Positions 2,605 to 16,891 of a stretch of 64,000 nt of DNA are shown here, piece by piece. The notes beneath the pieces are model-generated. The model worked only from the letters and a program-made list of their open reading frames with translations. It was not told the DNA's origin and made no database searches. The stretch is from the NCBI GenBank assembly GCA_021613535.1, contig CP075494.1, positions 8,370,001-8,434,000 of the forward strand, in the 5' to 3' direction. The stretch comes from Adineta vaga (lineage: Eukaryota > Animalia > Rotifera). The translations under genes and the position numbers were made by a program. How positions within the stretch are numbered: the first letter of the stretch is position 1; each line of letters begins with the position of its first letter.

Positions 2605-3744
2605 GTTTATTCAAGTTAAAGATAGAGAGTTTGATAAGGGTATACTATGGATCCAATCAGGTAATCTATGGTCCGAAGATTCGAAAAGATATCCTCAGTG
2701 TTGTTTTAAGAAAATATAATGATTTATACCGATGTTTTTGATTGATAATATGTTCTTGTATCATTATATCATATCTATTCATGATTTCTTTATAAAAACA
2801 TTCATTCTTTTCTTTCAATGCAATAGTCTTTATTTTGTCGATAGATTGTAATCGTACTTGTCAAAAGAAAAATGACTTCAATAGCGTTTCGATGATAAGA
2901 TCAATTTTTCTTTGCTTTATTCATGCTCATCGAACGGTATCCGTCTAATAATATATGATTTATATTATTACATATGCAAAGTAAAGGTGCAATCAACAAA
3001 CTAGATTGCATGTCTTTTTTTTCCAATGCATCGAGTCCTTTATTGATACGTGTATATTAAAATAAATTAAACGAAAATTTACAGGCAATTGATTCAGTAT
3101 ATATGGAACTAATTTGACCAATAATATGTACAGATTAATTGATTTAATCGATTGATGACTAGGGAAGATATTTTCTTGGCATTGATTGTTGTTTACGAGC
3201 TTTTCTGTTTTTGTCCTCGAAAGCCTTCTAATAGGAATGATCAATTATTTTTCTTTTTGTCTGATATTTTCGTTGTGTATTGCATTACATTTGTTATGGT
3301 ATAAGTTGAATAATTGTCTGCTCATTTCTCCTTGTCATCATAGAAGAACACATTTCATACATGTACATCACTTGTTGTCTATATATTCATTAATTATATT
3401 AGTTACTTGACACGAGTACACAAAGATATCATTCATCATTGAAAAAAATTGTCTCGATTGTTTTTTGTGTATTTTTCTTTTTGCACACACACACACATAG
3501 AATGTTGAGCGTCCACTTTTGATATAGGTAATTATACCTTAACATCAATCGATTATTTATTCTTTCTTATTTTCATTGTAATCTGTTCTTGCTTTTTGTA
3601 TTTTATTCTTTTTTCTTGCTCGTTCTTTCTGATCATTTTTGTCCTCCTACGTTCTCACTAATAAGTCATACTATATAACTCACCACAAACCACAAATTAT
3701 ATTGTGTTGTCTCTTAAATAATTTTTAGATACAAGTAAATAATC

Positions 3745-4431
3745 ATGGCAGCTGTTCTCAATCCTTATAATGCATTTACAGGTTTTCAACAACAATCTTT
3801 TTATTCAGGATTTCCTTTGAATTTTTCAACAGCACCTGTTGCAAATAGATTCTATGCACCACCACAGTTTCCTATCTATTCACAACCACCACCGATGACA
3901 GCATATCCATCGGAATCAGCCCGTGGATATCCTCAACAACAACAACAGGCACCATGTCAAGCACAACAGGTACCATGCCAAGCACGACAGACATCATACC
4001 AAGCACAAGGCGCATCACGTCAACCACAACAAGCACCAATGCATCCTCAACAGGCGCCATTACCACTTCGTCAACAAAACACAATACGATCTCAAAATGT
4101 GCCAATGCCTCCACCACCACCACCACAATCGGTACCATCACAAGAGAGAACAGTTGAATACGTAGATGCAGATCCAAGTATATTTCGTCGTCGTCAACCA
4201 CGTATTATTCGACAAGTAATCAAGTTACCAACGCCAGAACCAATCTATCGTCAAGTAAGACATCGTTTGCCAACACCTGAACGTGAAGTTATTCAACGAA
4301 CGATAATAAAGAAAGCAAATGGTGATGTCGTTGTCAGACAACAACAACCATCAAGACCTAGAACCGAAAGTCGAACGGAAAATACTTCATCACGTCATTC
4401 AACACGTCATCGACATGTTTATACTGATTAA
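3745..4431 (+). CDS. Pro/Gln-rich low-complexity protein with repeated LPTPE motif, function unknown
   Basis: 228-aa ORF with coding-like composition; TTTTAG acceptor about 15 bp upstream of the ATG; overlapping ORFs are shadows. Confidence 0.75.
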   Translation: MAAVLNPYNAFTGFQQQSFYSGFPLNFSTAPVANRFYAPPQFPIYSQPPPMTAYPSESARGYPQQQQQAPCQAQQVPCQARQTSYQAQGASRQPQQAPMHPQQAPLPLRQQNTIRSQNVPMPPPPPPQSVPSQERTVEYVDADPSIFRRRQPRIIRQVIKLPTPEPIYRQVRHRLPTPEREVIQRTIIKKANGDVVVRQQQPSRPRTESRTENTSSRHSTRHRHVYTD

Positions 4432-5347
4432 GACTTATCTTAATCAAGTTCGAAGATCGATTGAAAAAATACTATTCGTTCTTCATTTAATTAATTATTT
4501 ATTTTTCGCTTTTATCTTAGACACTTTATTTATTGTCACACTTTTTTTTTCTAATTGTCTCTTTTAAACCGGAATTGTCATAAATAGATAGAATATAAAT
4601 CATAACATGTCTATCAGTCAATTTTTTTTTCTACTTAAATTTAATTATTTCAAATCATGCATATAGATACCTTTAGATAGCAAAATTTTCTACTGCTATC
4701 ACATAATGGATAATATTATTTACTAATCAATCGGAACTATTGATATGGTCGACGAGCATTTGATTTCATTGTGACAATAACATAGACACTGTATTGTGAC
4801 CTCAGAATCAATTATTGTTTTGATAATGATCTCTGTCTGTATGTATAAAGAATCTCAAGGTGTATAAGAATAAGGTTAACAAATTTAGGTGGACTACATA
4901 ATTGCATTGTAATTTATTGCAATTGAACTACGTATTTTTGTTCGTTTTCTTCCTATCTTTGTTCACAAACATAAGAGAAGGATAATCTGATGTTGCTTTG
5001 ATTGATTTTTAGAGTCAATATTTTAGTTGAATCATTGACATCAATTTACAAAATCTAAGTTTTGAGACATATAAAAAACAGTCATGTATGATAGAAATAC
5101 AGGTGTATTCTGTTCACTGCTCGCCCACACTCTCAAGTTTATCTTTAAAATATCATTGGTTAATCTTTTAAGAAAAATCGGATTGTATTTATCTGTTCGG
5201 TTTTTTCCTTTCATTTCCTATCTACGATAACATACAAAATAAATGAGTAATGATTGAAAGATCAATGACGTCATATATTCTCTTTTGCATTACACGTAAA
5301 CGTACTTAAAACATACATTTCCTAATTCAGTTATATTGTGTATTCTC

Positions 5348-6053
5348 TTACCTAATAAAATCTTACTGGATATCTTCGAATATTTATCTATGATCGAACT
5401 TTTTCATAGCTTTGACAAATCTCAATTCACATTTTAATTATCTACCAACAATTTTTTAAATGATGCTAAATTTAGTTTCTTTATCCATATAAATATATGA
5501 GCTTAAGTATCAAATGACATTAATGGCAATATCACATTATGATAAGGATATGGAAGAAGAATTCAATGAATTAGTTGATTCATTTCGAACAAACTTTGGG
5601 ATTGATGAATATCAATGGTCTATCAGTTGTGATTGTTTATATTCAAATCTATACTATCGTTTTATTCTGAAGACGTTACCAGATGTTTTAGAAAATGAAC
5701 ATAGAGCAGTTGTGAAATCGATTCGATCTCATCCTGGTTTTAATCAAAATAAAATATTTGAATTGTCTTTTCCAACTGATGAACGATTTCTTACAATCGA
5801 TTCGACTTTTGAGCGACTCACTTCCCTCACAGTTCTTCATTCTAACAATCAACATATTGATCATATATCATCACAACTACAACTACTACTTGATAGTTCA
5901 CCTCGTCTCTATTCATTAATTTTTCGTACGGAATCAGTGTATCGCTTAGAAGTACCACTGACGAACTTAACAAGTAAATCAATTCATCAAAAACATAACT
6001 TTCTTTTTGTTTGGTTTTGTCGATATTTTTTGATTTTTCTTGTTTTTATTTGA
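5348..6053 (+). pseudogene. Degenerate F-box/LRR-like gene relic
   Basis: 5348 onward reads LPNKILLDIFEYLSMIELFHSF, then a +1 frameshift to NLNSHFNYL (N-terminal F-box-like motif). The 5514-6053 ORF has an LRR-like segment (LQLLLDSSPRLYSLIF) and runs out into non-coding sequence. Confidence 0.6.
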
Positions 6054-6468
6054 TTACTGTATGTTCTGAAGTAGATGAGTAATTTTTAAAAGTATTAGAG
6101 CAAACGAGTAAAACAGAAGAGAAGTCTCTAGTTGAAACATCGGTATACATAGCAAAGATTTTATATTGAAATTGAAATTTGTCGTATTTCTTTAGTGAAC
6201 GCATCGGGCGAATTCATCAAAAAAATGCAAATCACTTTTAGGATTTTGTCTTGAATAATTTCGCGCAAACTTTTCATCAGTAACCTATTTTTTTGTATAT
6301 AAAAATATTTGTCTTTAGTCTTGTTAACATTCTTCGTTATGTATTAATAAAATAAAGGAATACGCCGGCAGAAAAGAAATATATAGGGATTTATTCTCAA
6401 GATTGAAGCCATGTGTTTCTTTAAAAAGTTCAGTCAAGAAAAGCGAGATACTCGAGGTAAAAATAGAG

Positions 6469-7951
6469 TCAACCAATACGATTGAATTTTATAACTCGAT
6501 AATTGTTTGGATCTGTGACATATAAATTGCGATTGGAATCCAATGCAATGCCGGTAGGATAGGAGAACTGAGATCCTGCAATAATTCGACCACTTGAACC
6601 CGGCGAGTTTGAACAAAATAAGACAATGCGACGATTGCTGGAATCCGATACGTAGATATTGCCTTGTGAATCACGTTTCACGTCTTGTGGATAGGAAAAT
6701 AAATACTCTGTGGAACCATATGTATTATTAGCTCCGAGTAATATTGCTCCATTCGTAGCCCCTATTTGCCATGCAACAATTGTGTGTGCATTATAATTGG
6801 TAATATACATTGTATTCGTTGTTATATCTACGGTGAAGCCATAAGGATAGTAGAGTTGTGATGTTGAAAGGCCACAACTTTGATCACCTGCCAATATAGT
6901 GCCAGCTGTAGATGTTGGCGTCCACATTCGTACAACACAGTTATATGTATAACTGGCATATACGTTTTTGTTTGTATCAACAAAAAGCCCCAAGACACTA
7001 CCTAGACCATTTGAACCTGGAAGTTGTGTACTAGTCAATGCACCTATTGCCCATACGCGAATACCAATACTATCAGCAATATAGAGGTTTCCATTTGAAT
7101 CACCAGTAATTGCTGTAGGATAAGAGAGTAAACTATTATTACTTCCCAGAAAACCTGAAACACCTGCAATAGTAGTCCCAGACACAGCATTTGGTAGCCA
7201 CTGTTGAACACGATGATTATTGTAATCAGCTATGTACATCGCATTATTCGGATCAACATAGATAGCTATCTGATACCCGAATTGATTCGCTGCGTTACCA
7301 TATGATCCATTGCCTGCGACCATCACACCAACTCGTTCCCACTGTAATGAACTACCTAAATGGCAATCAATAGATACACGCCGATTCTTAACAAAATCGA
7401 CGCTATGATAAATATTTACATGCTGAATTTGTCGCTGTCGTTGAAGATGAGGGCCCTATGCATAAAATAATCATCATATATAAATAGCATAGTTATTTTC
7501 GACTTAGTAACGTACTCGACAAAAGAACTCCCAAGCAGTGCCTGTTGATATAGCAGCAATACCTAAGCCGACTAGCAGACCGATTAGACGATTCTTCCAT
7601 GCTAATGTAAAACAACTTTTCCTAAACGAAAAGAAACGAAAAATGCTTACTATTGCTTCAATATTAAACTAACATTTTTGCGTAAGCTCTATATTTGTTC
7701 GATTTCTCTTCTGATATAGATGGTGGCAGCCATGCATTGGAATTAGCAGTAGTCGTACTTGGTGAATGGAGAAGATTGGCTGGACTAACTTGTTGACGAC
7801 TAGGTCGTTCTTGATCATTCGCTGCACGTGTTAGTATCCGACTAAACCGAGGATCAATTGATGCACTAATAGGTATCGATATTTCAGATGGACGAGTCAT
7901 TTGACTCGCTTGAAGAGCATATTGTTCACACAATATACTACCACGATACAT
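6469..7951 (-). CDS. Single-pass membrane protein with NHL-repeat beta-propeller; exons approx. 7951-7674, 7621-7516, 7455-7420, 7356-6469
   Basis: Repeated YPxGIxxDxxxNLYV/IxDxxNxRV NHL units. GT-AG introns link an N-terminal low-complexity exon and a TM exon (LIGLLVGLGIAAIS). Confidence 0.85.
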
Positions 7952-10913: not shown

Positions 10914-12032
10914 ATGTTTGACAGTAAGTAGAAGATTTTCATTGAAATGTATAGAAAATATTTTATTATACTTTCAGAATCCATTTCTGATGATTGTTGG
11001 TATTCAATTATTAATTTAACAAATTCAACTGTTGTTCGTCAAACAACTGGAAATGAATGTCGATTTTCTAGAATAGCTGGTACAATCTTATTAATCGTTG
11101 CAATTAATTCACTTATATTCAATATTTATTCATTAAAATTATCAAAAAAACGTTTACAAATGTCATCACATGATCGAACACTTATTATTGGAATGTTTAT
11201 TTCATCTTTATGTGTAACTGTTATAAGTACACCATCGGTCATCACACAATGTTTTCTTTGTCATCAATTATGTTCATCATTGATTTGTCGAATAGAAGGT
11301 TTTAATTCATTTTTTAATGGTTGTGCAACAATGCATTTGCTTGTTTCTTTATCAATTGTTCGTTATGTAACAACAGCTAATTCACCATTTTCAATTCATT
11401 TTCAACATCAAATTAAACGACTAGATCTTTTATTAGTTTTCATTTGTTTTCTTACTGGAAGTATATGGTCTATTCCACCAATGTTTAGTTATATCAATAG
11501 TTACGTACCTGAAGGACTTGGTTTTCATTGTGGTTTAAATTGGTTTAATCGTTCATTATCGAGTCGAACTTATTTCTTTTTACTTTTTCTGTGTGTCTAC
11601 TTTATTCCTATCACCATAATGATATGTATTAATTTTAGTATTCAACGAACAATTCATCGTTTAACACGTTTATATCCTAATGTTTTACTTGACATTACTA
11701 ATCGACCTTGTGAACATATTCTTCGACGACATATTTCAAAAACATTATGTGATAAAAGTCTACAACGATTACAACATTTATATGAAGATCGACGATTTGT
11801 TATAGCAACAGGCGTCAGTGTTGTGATTTATCTCATTGCATGGACACCCTATAGCATAGTAGCTTTGTCTCAATTATTTGGTAGAAGTTTTTCATTATAT
11901 AAACCATGGATTATGACAATATGTGCATTCTTAGCAAAAATTTCGATAATGATTAATCCGACTATTTACACAATTTTAATAAGAGCTCAAGAAACAATAG
12001 AAATTCTTCATAGTGAAGATGATCTCTTTTGA
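10914..12032 (+). CDS. Opsin (retinal-binding class A GPCR); micro-exon 10914-10923 + exon 10978-12032
   Basis: 7 TM helices; CRIEGF (TM3), YVPEGLGFHCGLNW (ECL2), AWTPY (TM6), FLAK...NPTIY with Schiff-base Lys at 11937-11939. ATGTTTGACA|GTAAGT...TTTCAG joins in frame. Confidence 0.92.
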
Positions 12033-12126: not shown

Positions 12127-13322
12127 TTATACTTGTTCATTGATAAATAAAATGAAAAATGCATCATTTTGAATTTGTAAATCATTCATGGAACATTTTG
12201 AATGTGCTAAATAACCATTTACAAAAAAATATTGATTGTTCAATGAAAAACCATGTGTATATTGAAACTATACATAGAAACAAATATAAACACAATTAAG
12301 AAAATTCAGATCTATGTATTTACTATCACTTTAAGTTCGTGAACAGTTGTTGATTCATATATGTTCAAATTGTGTTCTTCATTAATCAAATTCTTTGGTA
12401 TATCAATGCCATCCATTTTAACGCGGATACTATTCAAATAAAAAGATATTTTCATATAAAGAGAAGTAGATGGTGAATTTCTGCATACCGAAGTGGACGA
12501 TTTAGTTGACTGTCATCGGATGTTTTATCTATTAGTTGAATACCTTGCACCGCTAATTTCGATGCAAGGTTATAAGCACTGTTAGCATCACCATTCTGAA
12601 TTGATTCAGCAAAATTGTGAATATCGATAAGAATGCCTATAAGACAAATATGAAAAGATTATAACGACTAAATACTTTTGTATAACTTAATCAAGGTTTC
12701 CATCTATATTTATATGCTATACAACATTTTATTTTATTCGAAATCGTTCTTCTGAATTTGCTCTGTGTTTCGTCCTATCACGAATCATTGCGAGTTTTCA
12801 AAACTATTAGCATTACCACCTGTATAGTTTTTCTATACTCTCTAGATTTTACAATAGAATGAGAAAATCTGACCATTTCCACTAGAAACATTTTGTGATT
12901 TGGTTCCGCTCCATGTGGATGTATTGACAGAAGAATTTGTGTATTCAGAGTTTGTTGATTTATCTTTGATAGAATTGATTTGAGCAAAACACATTCGAAG
13001 TTGTTCATGAAATTTATCACGTGAGTCAGGATTCAATGTCAAACGATACATTGTATCTGCATATCGAATTTCATCAGGAGAATTCAGTGATGGTCCAAAT
13101 TTGTACATACTACTTCGTATAAATGAAATGTTGAAAATTTCCTATACAACAGAATTGTAACTCAAGATCTGAATTAAATATTCGTACTGCTTTTTTGTTT
13201 TGAATATCGAATGCTTGAAGTGAATATGTATTTGAAACATTTTTATGTAATTCAACAATTGATCTTTCGAATTCACCACGTGTAGATTGAATAACACAGG
13301 AAGCGTATGTTACAAGACTCAT
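12127..13322 (-). CDS. SHARPIN/HOIL-1-like protein A: PH-like N-terminus + LUBAC-tethering-motif-like segment + ubiquitin-like domain; exons 13322-13188, 13141-12874, 12636-12489, 12429-12324, 12267-12127
   Basis: All junctions GT-AG and phase-compatible. FAESIQNGDANSAYNLASKLAVQGIQL resembles the LTM; IYESTTVHELKVI|FQYTHGFSLNNQYFFVNG...FFILFI resembles the HOIL-1/SHARPIN UBL. Confidence 0.7.
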
Positions 13323-13617
13323 TTTTATTTGAATTTGACTATTTATATTTACATGACATGGAGATGGAGGAACGGATGGAAAGATTCCTTTTCAATTTCT
13401 ATGACTCATCGTACATGTTTTCTCACTGAAATTCTCAGCTCGAAACAAAGAAATTTCATTTGAATTTGTTGAGCTGTATCACAAAATTTCGAACACCAAT
13501 CTGTTGATTTGATATAGAGGGCTGTAATTCATTTTTGATTGGTTGAGACTTGTGTATATGTTTTAAACATTATTCTCATTTTTTTTTGTTTTTCCCGATA
13601 AACGAACAAAAAAAGAA
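13323..13617. promoter_or_regulatory. Putative bidirectional promoter between SHARPIN-like A (-) and ANAPC15 (+)
   Basis: Only 295 bp between two head-to-head start codons; contains ATTGG (CCAAT box on the minus strand) near 13539. Confidence 0.45.
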
Positions 13618-14105
13618 ATGTCTTTACATATCTGGCCAACAGTCGAAACATCTAAAGTTAGTTCATCATGGTTTCGACCATTACAACCTGGTAAACTTGA
13701 TTAGAATCTTGAATAAATTCAATTAAAAATTTGATGTTTTATTTTCAGCTCGGGAAGAATTGAATTTAACGAAACTTGAAGAAATGCTCGATCAAGCACG
13801 TCGACAATGTCTTGAAAAAGGTTTGTTATTTTATTAATATTTCCTAGTGTTGAACTTACAATGTCAATTCTAATTCAGGTCTTAATTTACCATTTCATGG
13901 CAAAACCGAAATGGATAATGCTGAGGTAAGATTTCTTGAAAATGAATGACAGAGAAAGATTTCTATATTTTAGGATGATGAAGATGCAGATGAAGCTGAA
14001 GAAGAAAGTGAAGGAGGTGAACCAGATGATGAAGTCGATGCACAACAAGGTCTTGGATCACCAGGAATTGCAGCTGGTATTCCACCAACACCACTTGATA
14101 CTTAA
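13618..14105 (+). CDS. ANAPC15: Anaphase-promoting complex subunit 15 (4 exons)
   Basis: Spliced product MSLHIWPTVETSKVSSSWFRPLQPAREELNLTKLEEMLDQARRQCLEKGLNLPFHGKTEMDNAEDDEDADEAEEESE... follows the APC15 pattern (WF..P..EE..L, EK..NL..GK, acidic tail). Not in the ORF track because of three short introns. Confidence 0.75.
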
Positions 14106-14209
14106 ATATTATAATTAGAATATTTTGTAAATAAATAAATTCATTTCATTGATGTTTTTTACTCTCAATCGGAGTGAAATTGTAATGAATTGTTCATATA
14201 TTTTCAGAT

Positions 14210-15669
14210 ATGTCCGTCCAAAATCGGTAGGATATTGAAAAGATAAAATGAGAAAATATTTCTCTAGTAATTTCATGTTTATCACAGTTCTGTTTCCGTT
14301 AAAATGGTACGCATTCAGTTACCAGATAGAAAACAACCGATTTCTCATCGTCAAGCTGTAATTACAATTCTAGAAGATTCACAAACCGATATTGCATATC
14401 TTCGAATTAGTGAAAATCAACAGGTATATGCAAATTATGTATTCGAGAAGGAAATTCTTATATCTATCAGAAATATCTGAATTTCATTATTCTTTTCATA
14501 ATGTCATTCAAATTTACAAAGACAAATCACATATTACACTAATTTACATGATTTTATTAGATAATTTTATCTGAAGAACTCAATCATTTCGAATGGATAG
14601 AAGAATCTTCTTCAGATGGAGTAGCAACAATCACATCATCATCGGCTAAAATCATTATTATTTATAATGCACAAGATAGAGTGTCACGAGATCTTTTCGT
14701 CAGAATGAGAACACTCCTTCAGAAAGGTGTGCTTTACATAAATATATTATGTTCTCTAAACTAATCTTGTACAATTTAGATTCACACAAAGAAGAGAGTA
14801 ATTCGAATTCATGGCAATGCATTCGAACGCCCGAAGGTATGCCTTCCTTGTGTAACATTTGAAAAAGAGAACTATTTTTGTTGTTAGTTCATTAGTCGTT
14901 AGATAATCACTTTTTAACTTTTCAATTATTAGACTCTACCTAAACGATAAATTTCAATCCGAATAACTTCGACTCTTATTCATTTATATACATTGAAATA
15001 AAATGATTATGTCTTATTCCATATGTATTTTTTTATGCAAAATAGATCATATAGAATTAGCTACTAATGATCTGATCAAATACATTCAAGAAGGATCATC
15101 GAAAAATGCTGAACATGCGGCGCAATTTCTTGCACAATCACGTGCACAACTTCAATTCAATATAATCAATCGTGATAACAATCAGAACGAAATGATAATG
15201 AAAAAACCTGAAACTAAAACACCATCATCCACTATTTTTCAGTTTGTTACTTTTATTTATTTTACTATTCAATTTCATCTGGCTGATTTAGATTACAGCT
15301 ACAAATTGAATGTTATTTAAATAGAAAACCATTAAATTCAACGATATATGTACATACTGGTACGAATCTTCGTACATTGAAAGAACAAGTTTGTTAATTA
15401 ACAAAAGAAGAAATTGATTTGAACAGATTGTTTCATTGATAATTTAGATCGAGAATAAAACAGGAATTAAGTGTAAAGATCAATTTTGGTATGCGTTTGG
15501 TCAATATATCATTCCTGATGAGTATGAATTTGGTTCTGAAGAACCAGTAGTTCGACCTCGTCCGAAAACATCTGGTCGTAAAAATCAAGTTACCCCTCCA
15601 AATGATCCTATTCGCGTTGGTGATACTTTAATTTTGTATATTGCTCAACTTCGTCCATATGCTTTATAA
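14210..15669 (+). CDS. SHARPIN/HOIL-1-like protein B: PH-like + LTM-like + UBL; 7 exons beginning approx. 14210, 14288, 14561, 14780, 15046, 15292, 15448
   Basis: Phase-consistent GT-AG splicing. LIKYIQEGSSKNAEHAAQFLAQSRAQLQF is LTM-like; IYVHTGTNLRTLKEQ|IENKTGIKCKDQFWYAFGQ...GDTLILYI is UBL-like. Confidence 0.7.
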
Positions 15670-15746
15670 ATATCATAAATAAATTGATTTTATTTTTAAT
15701 TCTGATGATGTTTTGGTTTTATTTGATTTCTTTATCTAATTTCTAG

Positions 15747-16891
15747 ATGACTGATCATCGCCGTCAAATAACGACAGATCTTGACACGCATCTAAATAAA
15801 ATTATTTTGCCATATCAATGTCGAAAATCAACTTTATCATATGGTGTATGGAATACATCTTTGAATATGATAGAAATTCTTCATCAACATCGATCATCAA
15901 CTAAGTGTTTTCTTACGATGGGTATTCGAAAAAATTCCAAATTTTATCTATATCCCGAAGAAGCAATATATCTAATGCAATCTTCCTTATTACAAGTATC
16001 CATGAGTAATTTTGATCAAAAACCAAACCTACCATTATCATTGAATGAAGCTTATTCATTATGGTTTAATAAATCTGTATACAATTTAAATTATTTACAT
16101 GTTTATCAATATTTAACGAGAATAGGATTTATTCTAACTCGACATCAATCACAAATAAGACAGAATGAGAAACAAGACGAACTATCAACAACAGTTACAA
16201 ATAGTACGAAACGAAAACGAGAGGATGAAGAAATAGAACTAATTGACATTCCACATAATGATTTACAAGATCAAAGTTATATTTGTCCGGTAAATATGTC
16301 TAAGCTAAGAATGATCAAATATACTTCATAATATTTTTTACATTACAGATTCATTCAACCACTGATTGTCAACGACTATGGTTTCCAAGATATACTGATG
16401 ATCCTCCAATATTGACAAAACAATATCCTCGTTTAGTATTTCCTGATAAATTATCTCCAGTATCTATAGATTGGCTTCCATCTGAATTCAATTCAAAAGT
16501 TTCTCAAGTTCAATTGTCTATTTATGAAAATAATCTATTAACACCTCGTCCGTCATATTCTCTTCTTCGATCAATCGATCTTCCATCTCATACTACAATC
16601 TATCAACGTTTATCTTCATTTGCTCCTCATTTGACTTCACCTACAAAATCACTATCATCATCAAATATTATCTTTAATATGTTTTCACCACAAAAACTTT
16701 TTCGTAAACATCTAATCAATACACCAGATTATCATATTGAAATTAAAGATGGTAATTCAGAATTCAACTTCGAAGATTTATATGCTTCTCAAGAAGGCAC
16801 ACATATGTTAACAGCTATTGTTCATCATGGTGATATTTCGTTTTATTCATTTAAACCATTTGATCCAATTGCAACATTACAATCAAAATAA
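15747..16891 (+). CDS. TSEN54: tRNA-splicing endonuclease subunit Sen54; intron 16290-16348
   Basis: TMG...LYPEEAIYL...LPLSLNEAY...VYQYLTRIGFIL at the N-terminus and AIVHHGDISFYSF at the C-terminus are Sen54 signatures. Confidence 0.88.

Follow-up and report, generated by a model that had tools for sequence, protein, structure and literature searches.

In the bdelloid rotifer Adineta vaga, two small genes, here called A and B, are part of a larger expansion of the SHARPIN/HOIL-1L (RBCK1) family in bdelloids and do not stand alone as a pair. SHARPIN and HOIL-1 are accessory subunits of LUBAC, the ligase that makes linear ubiquitin chains in mammals. Both rotifer products are predicted to be built from a PH-fold domain, a flexible linker, a LUBAC-tethering motif (LTM) and a ubiquitin-like domain (UBL), and they probably act as small adaptors of this family, in which the LTM would serve for tethering and the UBL for docking. 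All positions given below refer to the window, that is, the whole stretch of 64,000 nucleotides that was analysed.

Gene models, splicing and expression

Gene A is encoded on the minus strand (coding span 12127..13322, 265 aa) and gene B on the plus strand (14210..15669, 296 aa), with ANAPC15 (13618..14105, plus strand, four exons) located between them and head-to-head with A. In gene A, exon 1 (13188..13322), based on the exon model, an RNA joint and the AlphaFold model, encodes the first PH-like strands and ends in phase 0, and exon 2 (12874..13141) encodes the remaining PH-like domain with its C-terminal helix and a linker of which 68% is Ser, Thr or Asn, and ends in phase 1. Exon 3 (12489..12636, end phase 2) contains the LTM (two helices, residues 133-164) and a spacer, exon 4 (12324..12429, end phase 0) UBL strands 1-2 and the helix, and exon 5 (12127..12267) the UBL's second half with the stop codon, with no NZF after it; all five are on the minus strand. 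In gene B, all exons of which are on the plus strand, exon 1 (14210..14226) provides the start codon and the first residues, exons 2-3 (14288-14423 and 14561-14726) the PH-like domain and its C-terminal helix, exon 4 (14780..14836) the linker, exon 5 (15046..15241, end phase 2) the LTM and a low-complexity spacer, and exons 6-7 (15292-15388 and 15448-15669) the UBL with an insert of about 40 residues and the stop codon, again without an NZF following.

All introns of both genes are clean GT-AG introns in the exon models. The nine introns predicted for A and B were all seen as joints in RNA-derived contigs (runs X1, X2, X3 and X5, from two studies), and the same contig set displayed all 3 introns of ANAPC15. 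An extra 5' intron of B (14227-14287) appeared as an RNA joint (14226/14288) in run X1 only, and with it the introns with RNA joints number four in A and six in B. The joined exon models are identical to the deposited proteins P0003 (gene A; NCBI hypothetical protein I4U23_024565, Adineta vaga) and P0002 (gene B; NCBI hypothetical protein I4U23_024567, Adineta vaga); from the identity with P0002 it follows that the coding sequence of B starts at 14210 and not at 14304, and the extra 11 N-terminal residues are kept in orthologues. Both A and B are genuine genes that are expressed and spliced as modelled. An earlier note, made from the sequence alone, had described two intron-fragmented genes flanking ANAPC15, which the joints from the four runs bear out; in gene B the predicted introns stand, while the start had to be corrected, exon 1 having been missed. 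On the 3' side of gene A, one RNA contig (run X3) continues unspliced to 12064, and a poly(A) loose end of the same run is located at 15747, downstream of gene B.

Domain architecture and predicted folds

AlphaFold models of A show a PH-like domain (residues 1-106), a disordered linker, two helices (133-149 and 152-164) and a UBL (183-262), and those of B a PH-like domain (7-105), two helices (125-141 and 144-156) and a UBL (189-288) with a long insert. In the monomer models the LTM region has a moderate pLDDT of 50-80, and the strand after the helices is absent from the prediction. When the models were compared with 350,542 PDB chains using Foldseek, the top match for A (E 5.5e-9, 133 columns) and also for B (E 4.6e-6, 169 columns) was 5y3t_A, the chain with the LTM and UBL of HOIL-1L in the LUBAC core. 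The SHARPIN chain 5y3t_C came 4th among the matches of A and 12th among those of B, and identity to the two 5y3t chains was 16-19% in the Foldseek alignments.

With VIA-align, residues 1-106 of A reached Z 11.3-12.5 and the N-terminal domain of B reached Z 9-11 to RanBD, EVH1 and PH domains, and in the models both N-terminal domains clearly have the PH superfold (Z 9-12.5). The PH domain of SHARPIN (4emo_A) gave Z 9.4 for B, a score equalled by numerous EVH1, RanBD and PH domains, and the Pfam model Sharpin_PH (PF16764) matched neither the genome nor any protein of the A and B families. The HOIL-1L UBL chains 7v8e_D and 5y3t_A gave Z 9.4-12.5 with the models of A and B, and the Pfam ubiquitin model matched 9/9 members of the A family and 4/6 of the B family, mostly below its cut-off. 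Pfam scans detected neither a zinc finger or NZF nor an RBR in A or B, and both frames stop after the UBL; lacking a C-terminal NZF, the two proteins would have no ubiquitin-chain binding of their own. The earlier reading of both genes as SHARPIN/HOIL-1-like, with a PH-like domain, an LTM and a UBL and with no NZF or RBR, is backed by profiles, structures and paralogy, including the fold search that placed the HOIL-1L LTM-UBL chain first for both proteins.

The LTM and its contact residues

The best Pfam match of the LTM exon of A was the LTM model PF25393 (E 0.0064), at 16.8 bits and so below the cut-off of 27.5 bits. The same model matched 6 of the 9 A-family members and exceeded its cut-off in P0001; neither A nor B singly reached the Pfam cut-offs for LTM or ubiquitin. 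When a profile of the A family was searched against PDB sequences, the LTM and UBL of RBCK1 were matched as one stretch (E 3.2e-4), and SHARPIN was matched with E 2.8e-3. Family profile, fold match and sub-threshold Pfam match place an LTM directly N-terminal to the UBL in A. Scanned with Pfam exon by exon, gene A yielded this weak LTM match alone and gene B no match of any kind; the protein of B likewise had no Pfam LTM match, and the B-family profile alone gave no match to PDB sequences. The B family aligned with the A family in hhalign across LTM and UBL (probability 94%, E 1.5e-7), and gene B matched a local A-family HMM with E 2.7e-5, so that in B the LTM in front of the UBL is recognised through transitive and structural evidence and not from its sequence directly.

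Single LTM exons searched against PDB sequences returned only designed helical repeats and noise, and a profile of four rotifer LTM exons had the LTMs of RBCK1 and SHARPIN as its top two PDB matches, in register. Known LTM contact residues are L15, V19 and A31 of HOIL-1L and L176, I180 and A192 of SHARPIN (Fujita 2018, PMC6044281). The LTMs of A, B and two chromosome 2 paralogues were aligned to 5y3t_A and 8k6p_A, and in the columns at HOIL-1L L15, V19 and A31 the four rotifer LTMs have Phe or Leu at the first position and, without exception, Ile at the second and Ala at the third. The vertebrate LTM sequence quoted in the earlier note matches PDB chain 8k6p_A.

Helical hairpins are common, and B has neither a Pfam LTM match nor a PDB sequence match, so B, and with less likelihood A, might be a generic UBL protein in which two helices resemble an LTM by chance. 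That explanation is extremely improbable, as it is opposed by the hhalign alignment of B with the A family over LTM plus UBL, by the fold search of the whole PDB, in which B matched the LTM-UBL chain of HOIL-1L best and over 169 columns, and by intron positions and phases that B has in common with A and the chromosome 2 paralogues.

Introns, paralogues and origin of genes A and B

Intron positions were compared on hhalign and MAFFT alignments. A phase-0 intron in the PH domain, a phase-2 intron before UBL strand 1 and a phase-0 intron after LK-x-x lie at the same aligned residues in A and B, the phase-1 intron that precedes the LTM differs in position by one codon, and the linker of B contains one additional phase-1 intron (14727-14779) with no counterpart in A. 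The shared introns named in the earlier note were those before the LTM, before the UBL and after LKxx, of which the latter two are exact and the first is one codon off. Intron positions and phases are common not only to A and B but also to the chromosome 2 paralogues.

Exon 2 of A has matches at three other loci in the genome, and at least three further A. vaga genes encode this N-terminal domain, and two of these also an LTM; a word search with P0003 gave no match besides P0003 itself. Chromosome 2 carries an A-like gene and a PH-LTM-UBL-NZF gene, the latter directly upstream of a HOIL-1-type RBR, and chromosome 3 carries a PH-RBR fusion gene. For the C-terminus of the chromosome 2 RBR, RBCK1 was the sole PDB match (E 2.5e-12), and for its RING1 RBCK1 was the first (E 8e-8). 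A and B lack the RBCK1-type RBR module, which occurs downstream of the chromosome 2 paralogue and within the fusion gene of chromosome 3, and an NZF is found in the protein type P0034 and in the chromosome 2 gene. The A and B families are homologous, as judged from the hhalign comparison. In the tree, A clusters with the paralogues from chromosome 2 and B stands on a very long separate branch; the idea of A and B as mutual closest relatives was rejected on this evidence.

Orthologues of B were found in five other bdelloid species, with the gene order ANAPC15-B-TSEN54-amidase kept. In Rotaria, ANAPC15 and B have remained adjacent, and degenerate pieces of A-like sequence are located upstream of ANAPC15; the Pfam ANAPC15 domain is carried by the Rotaria neighbour gene and by the fused prediction P0068. 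TSEN54 is single-copy in the genome and is therefore uninformative on a duplicate of the A-ANAPC15-B region on another chromosome. Both A and B are kept across bdelloid genera with intact frames, and gene B evolves very fast and has the insert in its UBL.

The earlier note had proposed that A and B form a self-sufficient two-subunit tethering pair, mainly pairing mutually, which arose by an old local duplication independent of the vertebrate SHARPIN/HOIL-1L split. Their place on either side of one gene, four intron positions in common, LTM contact residues kept in both proteins and the situation in Rotaria, with its adjacent ANAPC15 and B and its A-like remnants, all speak for such a pair. We consider it improbable nonetheless: a self-contained pair is contradicted by the further genes that encode this N-terminal domain, of which two also have an LTM, and a single old local duplication is too simple because A clusters with the paralogues of chromosome 2 and B is on its own long branch. 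An independent origin is doubtful as well, since a rotifer paralogue with the full SHARPIN order PH-LTM-UBL-NZF (P0034) speaks for inheritance, and the PH-LTM-UBL architecture looks inherited rather than reinvented.

Search for a HOIP-type partner ligase

Pfam searches of the genome gave no match to the HOIP LDD model (PF18091) and none to OTULIN. The sole match to the HOIP double-UBA model (PF16678) was a DDI1-like gene, rejected on reading the locus, and the PUB-domain matches, considered as HOIP, belong to UBXN6-like and PNGase-like genes. Two paired RBR genes, situated at about 9.672-9.677 Mb of chromosome 3 and about 6.327-6.330 Mb of chromosome 6, displayed a weak match to RING2 of RNF31 (E 0.15), and the exon after RING2 matched RNF31 chains only, also weakly (E 0.35) and with the same zinc-ligand spacing; the matches to RING2-LDD of RNF31 were exclusive and in the right order. 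In pieces of the candidate no LDD was detected by Pfam, an open frame of 99 aa, partly made up of intron, had no PDB match, and an ESM Atlas feature search with the RING1 exon returned generic RBR clusters only. Judged by their sequences, the chromosome 3 and 6 genes are tentative HOIP candidates. The earlier note had suggested looking in the genome for HOIP, OTULIN and a full RBCK1, and what was obtained is this pair of tentative candidates and the HOIL-1-type RBR.

Possible roles and comparison with known systems

If A and B are adaptors, each LTM would pair with that of a second family protein and co-fold to form a tethering domain, for which A, B and the chromosome 2 paralogues are candidate partners, the NZF-bearing one above all. 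The UBLs would dock on the UBA of a partner ligase, which may be encoded by the paired RBR genes named above as tentative HOIP candidates, and A and B would act as stabilising or competing subunits that add no ubiquitin binding themselves. Alternatively, A and B could be truncated duplicates that serve as decoys, capping LTM or UBA sites and damping the ligase, or that use their PH fold in unrelated interactions. The loss of NZF and RBR from both genes would fit such a role, as would the very fast evolution and the UBL insert of B, and the PH domain of SHARPIN is a dimerisation and scaffold module for which LUBAC-independent functions are known (PMC9084887). Expression of both genes, frames that are intact across bdelloid genera and the retained LTM contact residues argue against it and leave it rather unlikely; the contact residues fit a positive or a negative subunit alike and so do not favour a decoy.

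The adaptor reading can be set beside known systems. With SHARPIN of the vertebrate LUBAC (4EMO, 5Y3T chain C, 8K6P), A and B have in common the order PH-fold, linker, LTM and UBL, an LTM in register with its contact positions kept, and folds that match 5y3t_C and, in the case of B, also 4emo_A. They differ from it in lacking the C-terminal NZF, in an N-terminal domain that Pfam Sharpin_PH does not recognise and, for B, in the large UBL insert. HOIL-1L/RBCK1 (5Y3T chain A, 4DBG, 8EAZ) is the best fold match for A and B and the best family-specific sequence match of the A family, and the chromosome 2 paralogue of A lies directly upstream of an RBR with an RBCK1-specific C-terminus, whereas A and B themselves are without NZF and RBR but possess an N-terminal PH-fold domain that is absent from vertebrate HOIL-1L. 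In Drosophila, the HOIP orthologue LUBEL works without HOIL-1L or SHARPIN, and flies have neither accessory subunit (PMC5090701). Fly and rotifer are alike as invertebrate departures from the three-subunit mammalian LUBAC, but flies have HOIP without accessory subunits whereas the rotifer has many accessory-type genes and an uncertain HOIP.

To our knowledge, work on SHARPIN and HOIL-1L has been carried out almost wholly on vertebrates, Drosophila being the single invertebrate that has been studied well. We found no description of rotifer homologues of SHARPIN or HOIL-1L in the literature, and the deposited proteins are unnamed. LTM-LTM and UBL-UBA binding are what we infer here, and the practical weight of the finding on A and B is limited accordingly. 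The presence of many LTM-UBL genes in one lineage offers natural variants with which the contributions of LTM, UBL and PH domain can be dissected, a PH domain on HOIL-1-type genes bears on the origin of SHARPIN and HOIL-1L, and the rotifer provides a test of whether accessory subunits can function when HOIP is very divergent or missing. A bolder and at present doubtful idea is that bdelloids run a combinatorial form of tethering, in which five or more LTM subunits, mostly without ubiquitin-binding fingers, would pair variously and tune a split-off HOIL-1-type ligase, perhaps together with a very divergent HOIP or with none. If this were true, the LTM-UBL module would predate the assembly of linear ubiquitin chains and could be separated from it, and the order PH-LTM-UBL-NZF(-RBR) would be ancestral to both SHARPIN and HOIL-1L.

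Gene structure and expression of A and B

Genes A and B lie in AT-rich eukaryotic DNA of about 30% G+C and were rebuilt from sequence, A with five exons on the minus strand and B on the plus strand. ANAPC15 separates the two genes, oriented head-to-head to A and in the same direction as B, and all introns of A and B are of the GT-AG type and 46-237 bases long. Contigs from four public runs of two studies were taken as transcripts since they behave as RNA, and all 9 of the 9 introns predicted for A and B, as well as the three introns of ANAPC15, were seen in them as joints, which bears out the earlier claim that two intron-fragmented genes flank ANAPC15. The predicted introns of B were thus confirmed in RNA, but the earlier model had missed its first exon and an additional 5' intron (14227-14287), both revealed by the RNA contigs. 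With this 5' exon included, the B model equals a database protein of 296 amino acids (P0002) in every residue, and its 11 additional N-terminal residues are kept in B orthologues; the A model equals a database protein of 265 amino acids (P0003). These identical proteins are named hypothetical proteins I4U23_024565 (A) and I4U23_024567 (B) of the bdelloid rotifer Adineta vaga. The message of B ends at 15747, where the RNA contigs carry a loose poly(A) end. A and B are real, expressed genes, spliced as first described, with one 5' exon added to B.

The genes are tightly packed: about 100 bases beyond the ANAPC15 stop, the first coding exon of B follows directly behind a TTTTCAG that resembles a splice acceptor (14105-14226), and the poly(A) site of B at 15747 borders immediately on the ATG of the TSEN54-like open frame that comes next (15669-15750). 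On the other side, a single-exon open frame of 361 amino acids with seven-transmembrane, GPCR-like features (10947-12032, plus strand) converges on the 3' end of A and stops 95 bases from its stop codon. The RNA contigs also contain two variant forms, with several linked differences in exon 2 of A (12924-12984) and in the last exon of B (15514-15589), which are probably alleles or strain differences.

Domain plan and relationship to HOIL-1L and SHARPIN

Early searches were done exon by exon and later ones with deposited full-length proteins, which were retrieved from 1.84 billion representative proteins by a profile of the four A. vaga LTM exons. In AlphaFold models based on family alignments, A and B have the same plan, in which a seven-stranded domain with a closing long helix is followed by a disordered linker and two helices, and a further short disordered stretch leads to a beta-grasp UBL. 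When these models were compared with the whole PDB by Foldseek, the best match for both was 5y3t_A, the LTM-UBL part of HOIL-1L in the LUBAC core; the alignment spanned 133 columns for A (E 5.5e-9) and 169 columns for B (E 4.6e-6). The SHARPIN chain of 5y3t ranked 4 for A and 12 for B. A structure search independent of Foldseek placed both N-terminal domains in the PH superfold, that of A at Z 11.3-12.5 against RanBD, EVH1 and PH domains and that of B at Z 9-11; for B, 4emo_A, the PH domain of SHARPIN, reached Z 9.4, level with many other domains. The domain reading of the earlier note, PH-like domain, LTM and UBL, is upheld by these structural matches, including the comparison with the LTM and the HOIL-1 UBL that it had proposed.

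At the sequence level, the A-family profile matched the LTM and UBL of RBCK1 (HOIL-1L) as a single continuous stretch (E 3.2e-4) and also matched SHARPIN (E 2.8e-3), and the best two of 177,635 PDB sequences for the four-exon LTM profile were the LTMs of RBCK1 and SHARPIN, in register. The tethering domain is held together by L15, V19 and A31 of HOIL-1L and L176, I180 and A192 of SHARPIN (Fujita et al., PMC6044281), and the columns aligned to these residues are conserved in 4 of the 4 rotifer LTMs. B alone gave no match with the Pfam LTM model or in PDB sequence searches; it is tied to the A family by hhalign (probability 94%, E 1.5e-7, over the LTM and the N-terminal half of the UBL), by a local HMM test (E 2.7e-5) and by common introns.

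Read on the alignments, three introns of A and B have exactly equal place and phase, namely one in the PH domain (phase 0), one before UBL strand 1 (phase 2) and one after the LK-x-x motif (phase 0). The latter two had been described as shared and stood, but the phase-1 intron before the LTM, likewise described as shared, is one codon apart in A and B. The linker of B has one further phase-1 intron, and the same four introns are also present in both chromosome 2 paralogues.

Family tree and gene order in bdelloids

All named family members belong to Adineta or Rotaria, two bdelloid genera, and their names are solely automatic, such as 'ubiquitin-like domain-containing protein'. In a maximum-likelihood tree of 16 sequences, A pairs with an Adineta ricciae protein inside the group that holds the chromosome 2 paralogues, and the B clade lies outside this group, separated by a very long branch. 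The closest relative of A is thus not B, nor that of B A, which makes the earlier idea of a single old local duplication an oversimplification.

The order ANAPC15-B-TSEN54-amidase is retained in Rotaria sordida, which together with the close packing in A. vaga is compatible with an operon organisation. Upstream of the R. sordida ANAPC15, no intact A-like gene was found at 4700-5100 (minus strand) of the excerpted locus L048, where only two short, collinear fragments occur, resembling exon 1 and the PH-domain helix of the A family (E 0.004 each). They may be a decayed A-like copy, so the arrangement A-ANAPC15-B may, tentatively, be old.

Paralogues in the A. vaga genome

The genome searched was the 100.8-Mb assembly of six contigs, in the fifth of which the window occupies 8,370,001-8,434,000. 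The Pfam LTM model gave two matches, both on chromosome 2, and exon 2 of A matched both of these genes and one gene on chromosome 3. The chromosome 2 genes form a tandem pair on the minus strand (C2:9200000-9204800; about 3030-7806 of the excerpted locus L003). Gene one is A-like and stops after PH, LTM and UBL; gene two has in addition a RanBP2-type finger (Pfam E 4e-6) and is directly followed by a further two fingers of this type and a RING1-IBR-RING2 module. The final 38 residues of this RBR match RBCK1 alone in the PDB (E 2.5e-12) and its RING1 matches RBCK1 first (E 8e-8), so that the genome check for an RBCK1-type gene found a HOIL-1-type RBR with an RBCK1-specific C-terminus. An in-frame stop behind the first finger of gene two suggests that the NZF-bearing gene and the RBR downstream are two separate genes. 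The Adineta steineri protein P0034 (PH-LTM-UBL-NZF, 313 amino acids) terminates where this stop falls, and none of the 64 LTM matches to the LTM profile among representative proteins exceeds 571 amino acids.

On chromosome 3 (C3:13075690-13077230, minus strand; about 4690-6230 of locus L011), the PH-type domain of this family is joined directly to a HOIL-1-type RBR in one open frame, which showed no LTM, UBL or NZF. The IBR_1 model had at least 79 matches in the whole genome, many of them lying at 4.27-4.57 Mb on chromosome 1 in near-identical clusters, which suggests that RBR ubiquitin ligases have expanded greatly. The wider paralogue family changes the interpretation of the A/B pair.

Search for HOIP

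The Pfam models for the HOIP LDD and for OTULIN had no match in the A. vaga genome, in searches that examine each exon separately and overlook weak segments, the LTM search having missed A and B themselves. The double-UBA model matched nothing but a DDI1-like gene, and matches to the PUB model were confined to UBXN6-like and PNGase-like genes, none of them HOIP. The check for HOIP and OTULIN thus yielded no such gene with these models, but it did yield a tentative RNF31-like pair of RBR genes with an unusual RING2 (C3:9671500-9676000, locus L049, minus strand; C6:6327600-6329750, locus L050, plus strand), which look like mutual duplicates and are among the IBR-type matches of the genome. Their RING2 exon, which may resemble that of HOIP, matched ARIH2 in the PDB at E 0.047, followed by many RNF31 chains at E 0.15 (residues 33-59 of 4ljo). 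A profile of the exon right after RING2 matched four PDB sequences only, all RNF31 (E 0.35), aligning to residues 61-89 of 4ljo, immediately C-terminal to the RING2 match, with an identical zinc-ligand spacing of C-x4-C-x6-H-x-H-x4-C. These RNF31 matches have weak scores, yet they are collinear and exclusive. The two genes are regarded as a tentative HOIP-like candidate, with about even odds, that was missed by the Pfam LDD model.

Possible role of A and B

By analogy to the solved LUBAC core (PMC6044281), each LTM would be expected to pair with another LTM, the two folding together as one small domain, and each UBL would be seated on a UBA of the ligase. Having no ubiquitin-binding finger, A and B would, by inference, act in a ligase complex as stabilisers, or as competitors at the LTM and UBA sites, and their most obvious partner would be the NZF-bearing paralogue. 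Drosophila LUBEL (PMC5090701) represents the opposite case, as flies have HOIP but no accessory subunits. Our literature search found no account of rotifer SHARPIN or HOIL-1 homologues, and A and B represent a variant of the SHARPIN/HOIL-1 theme.
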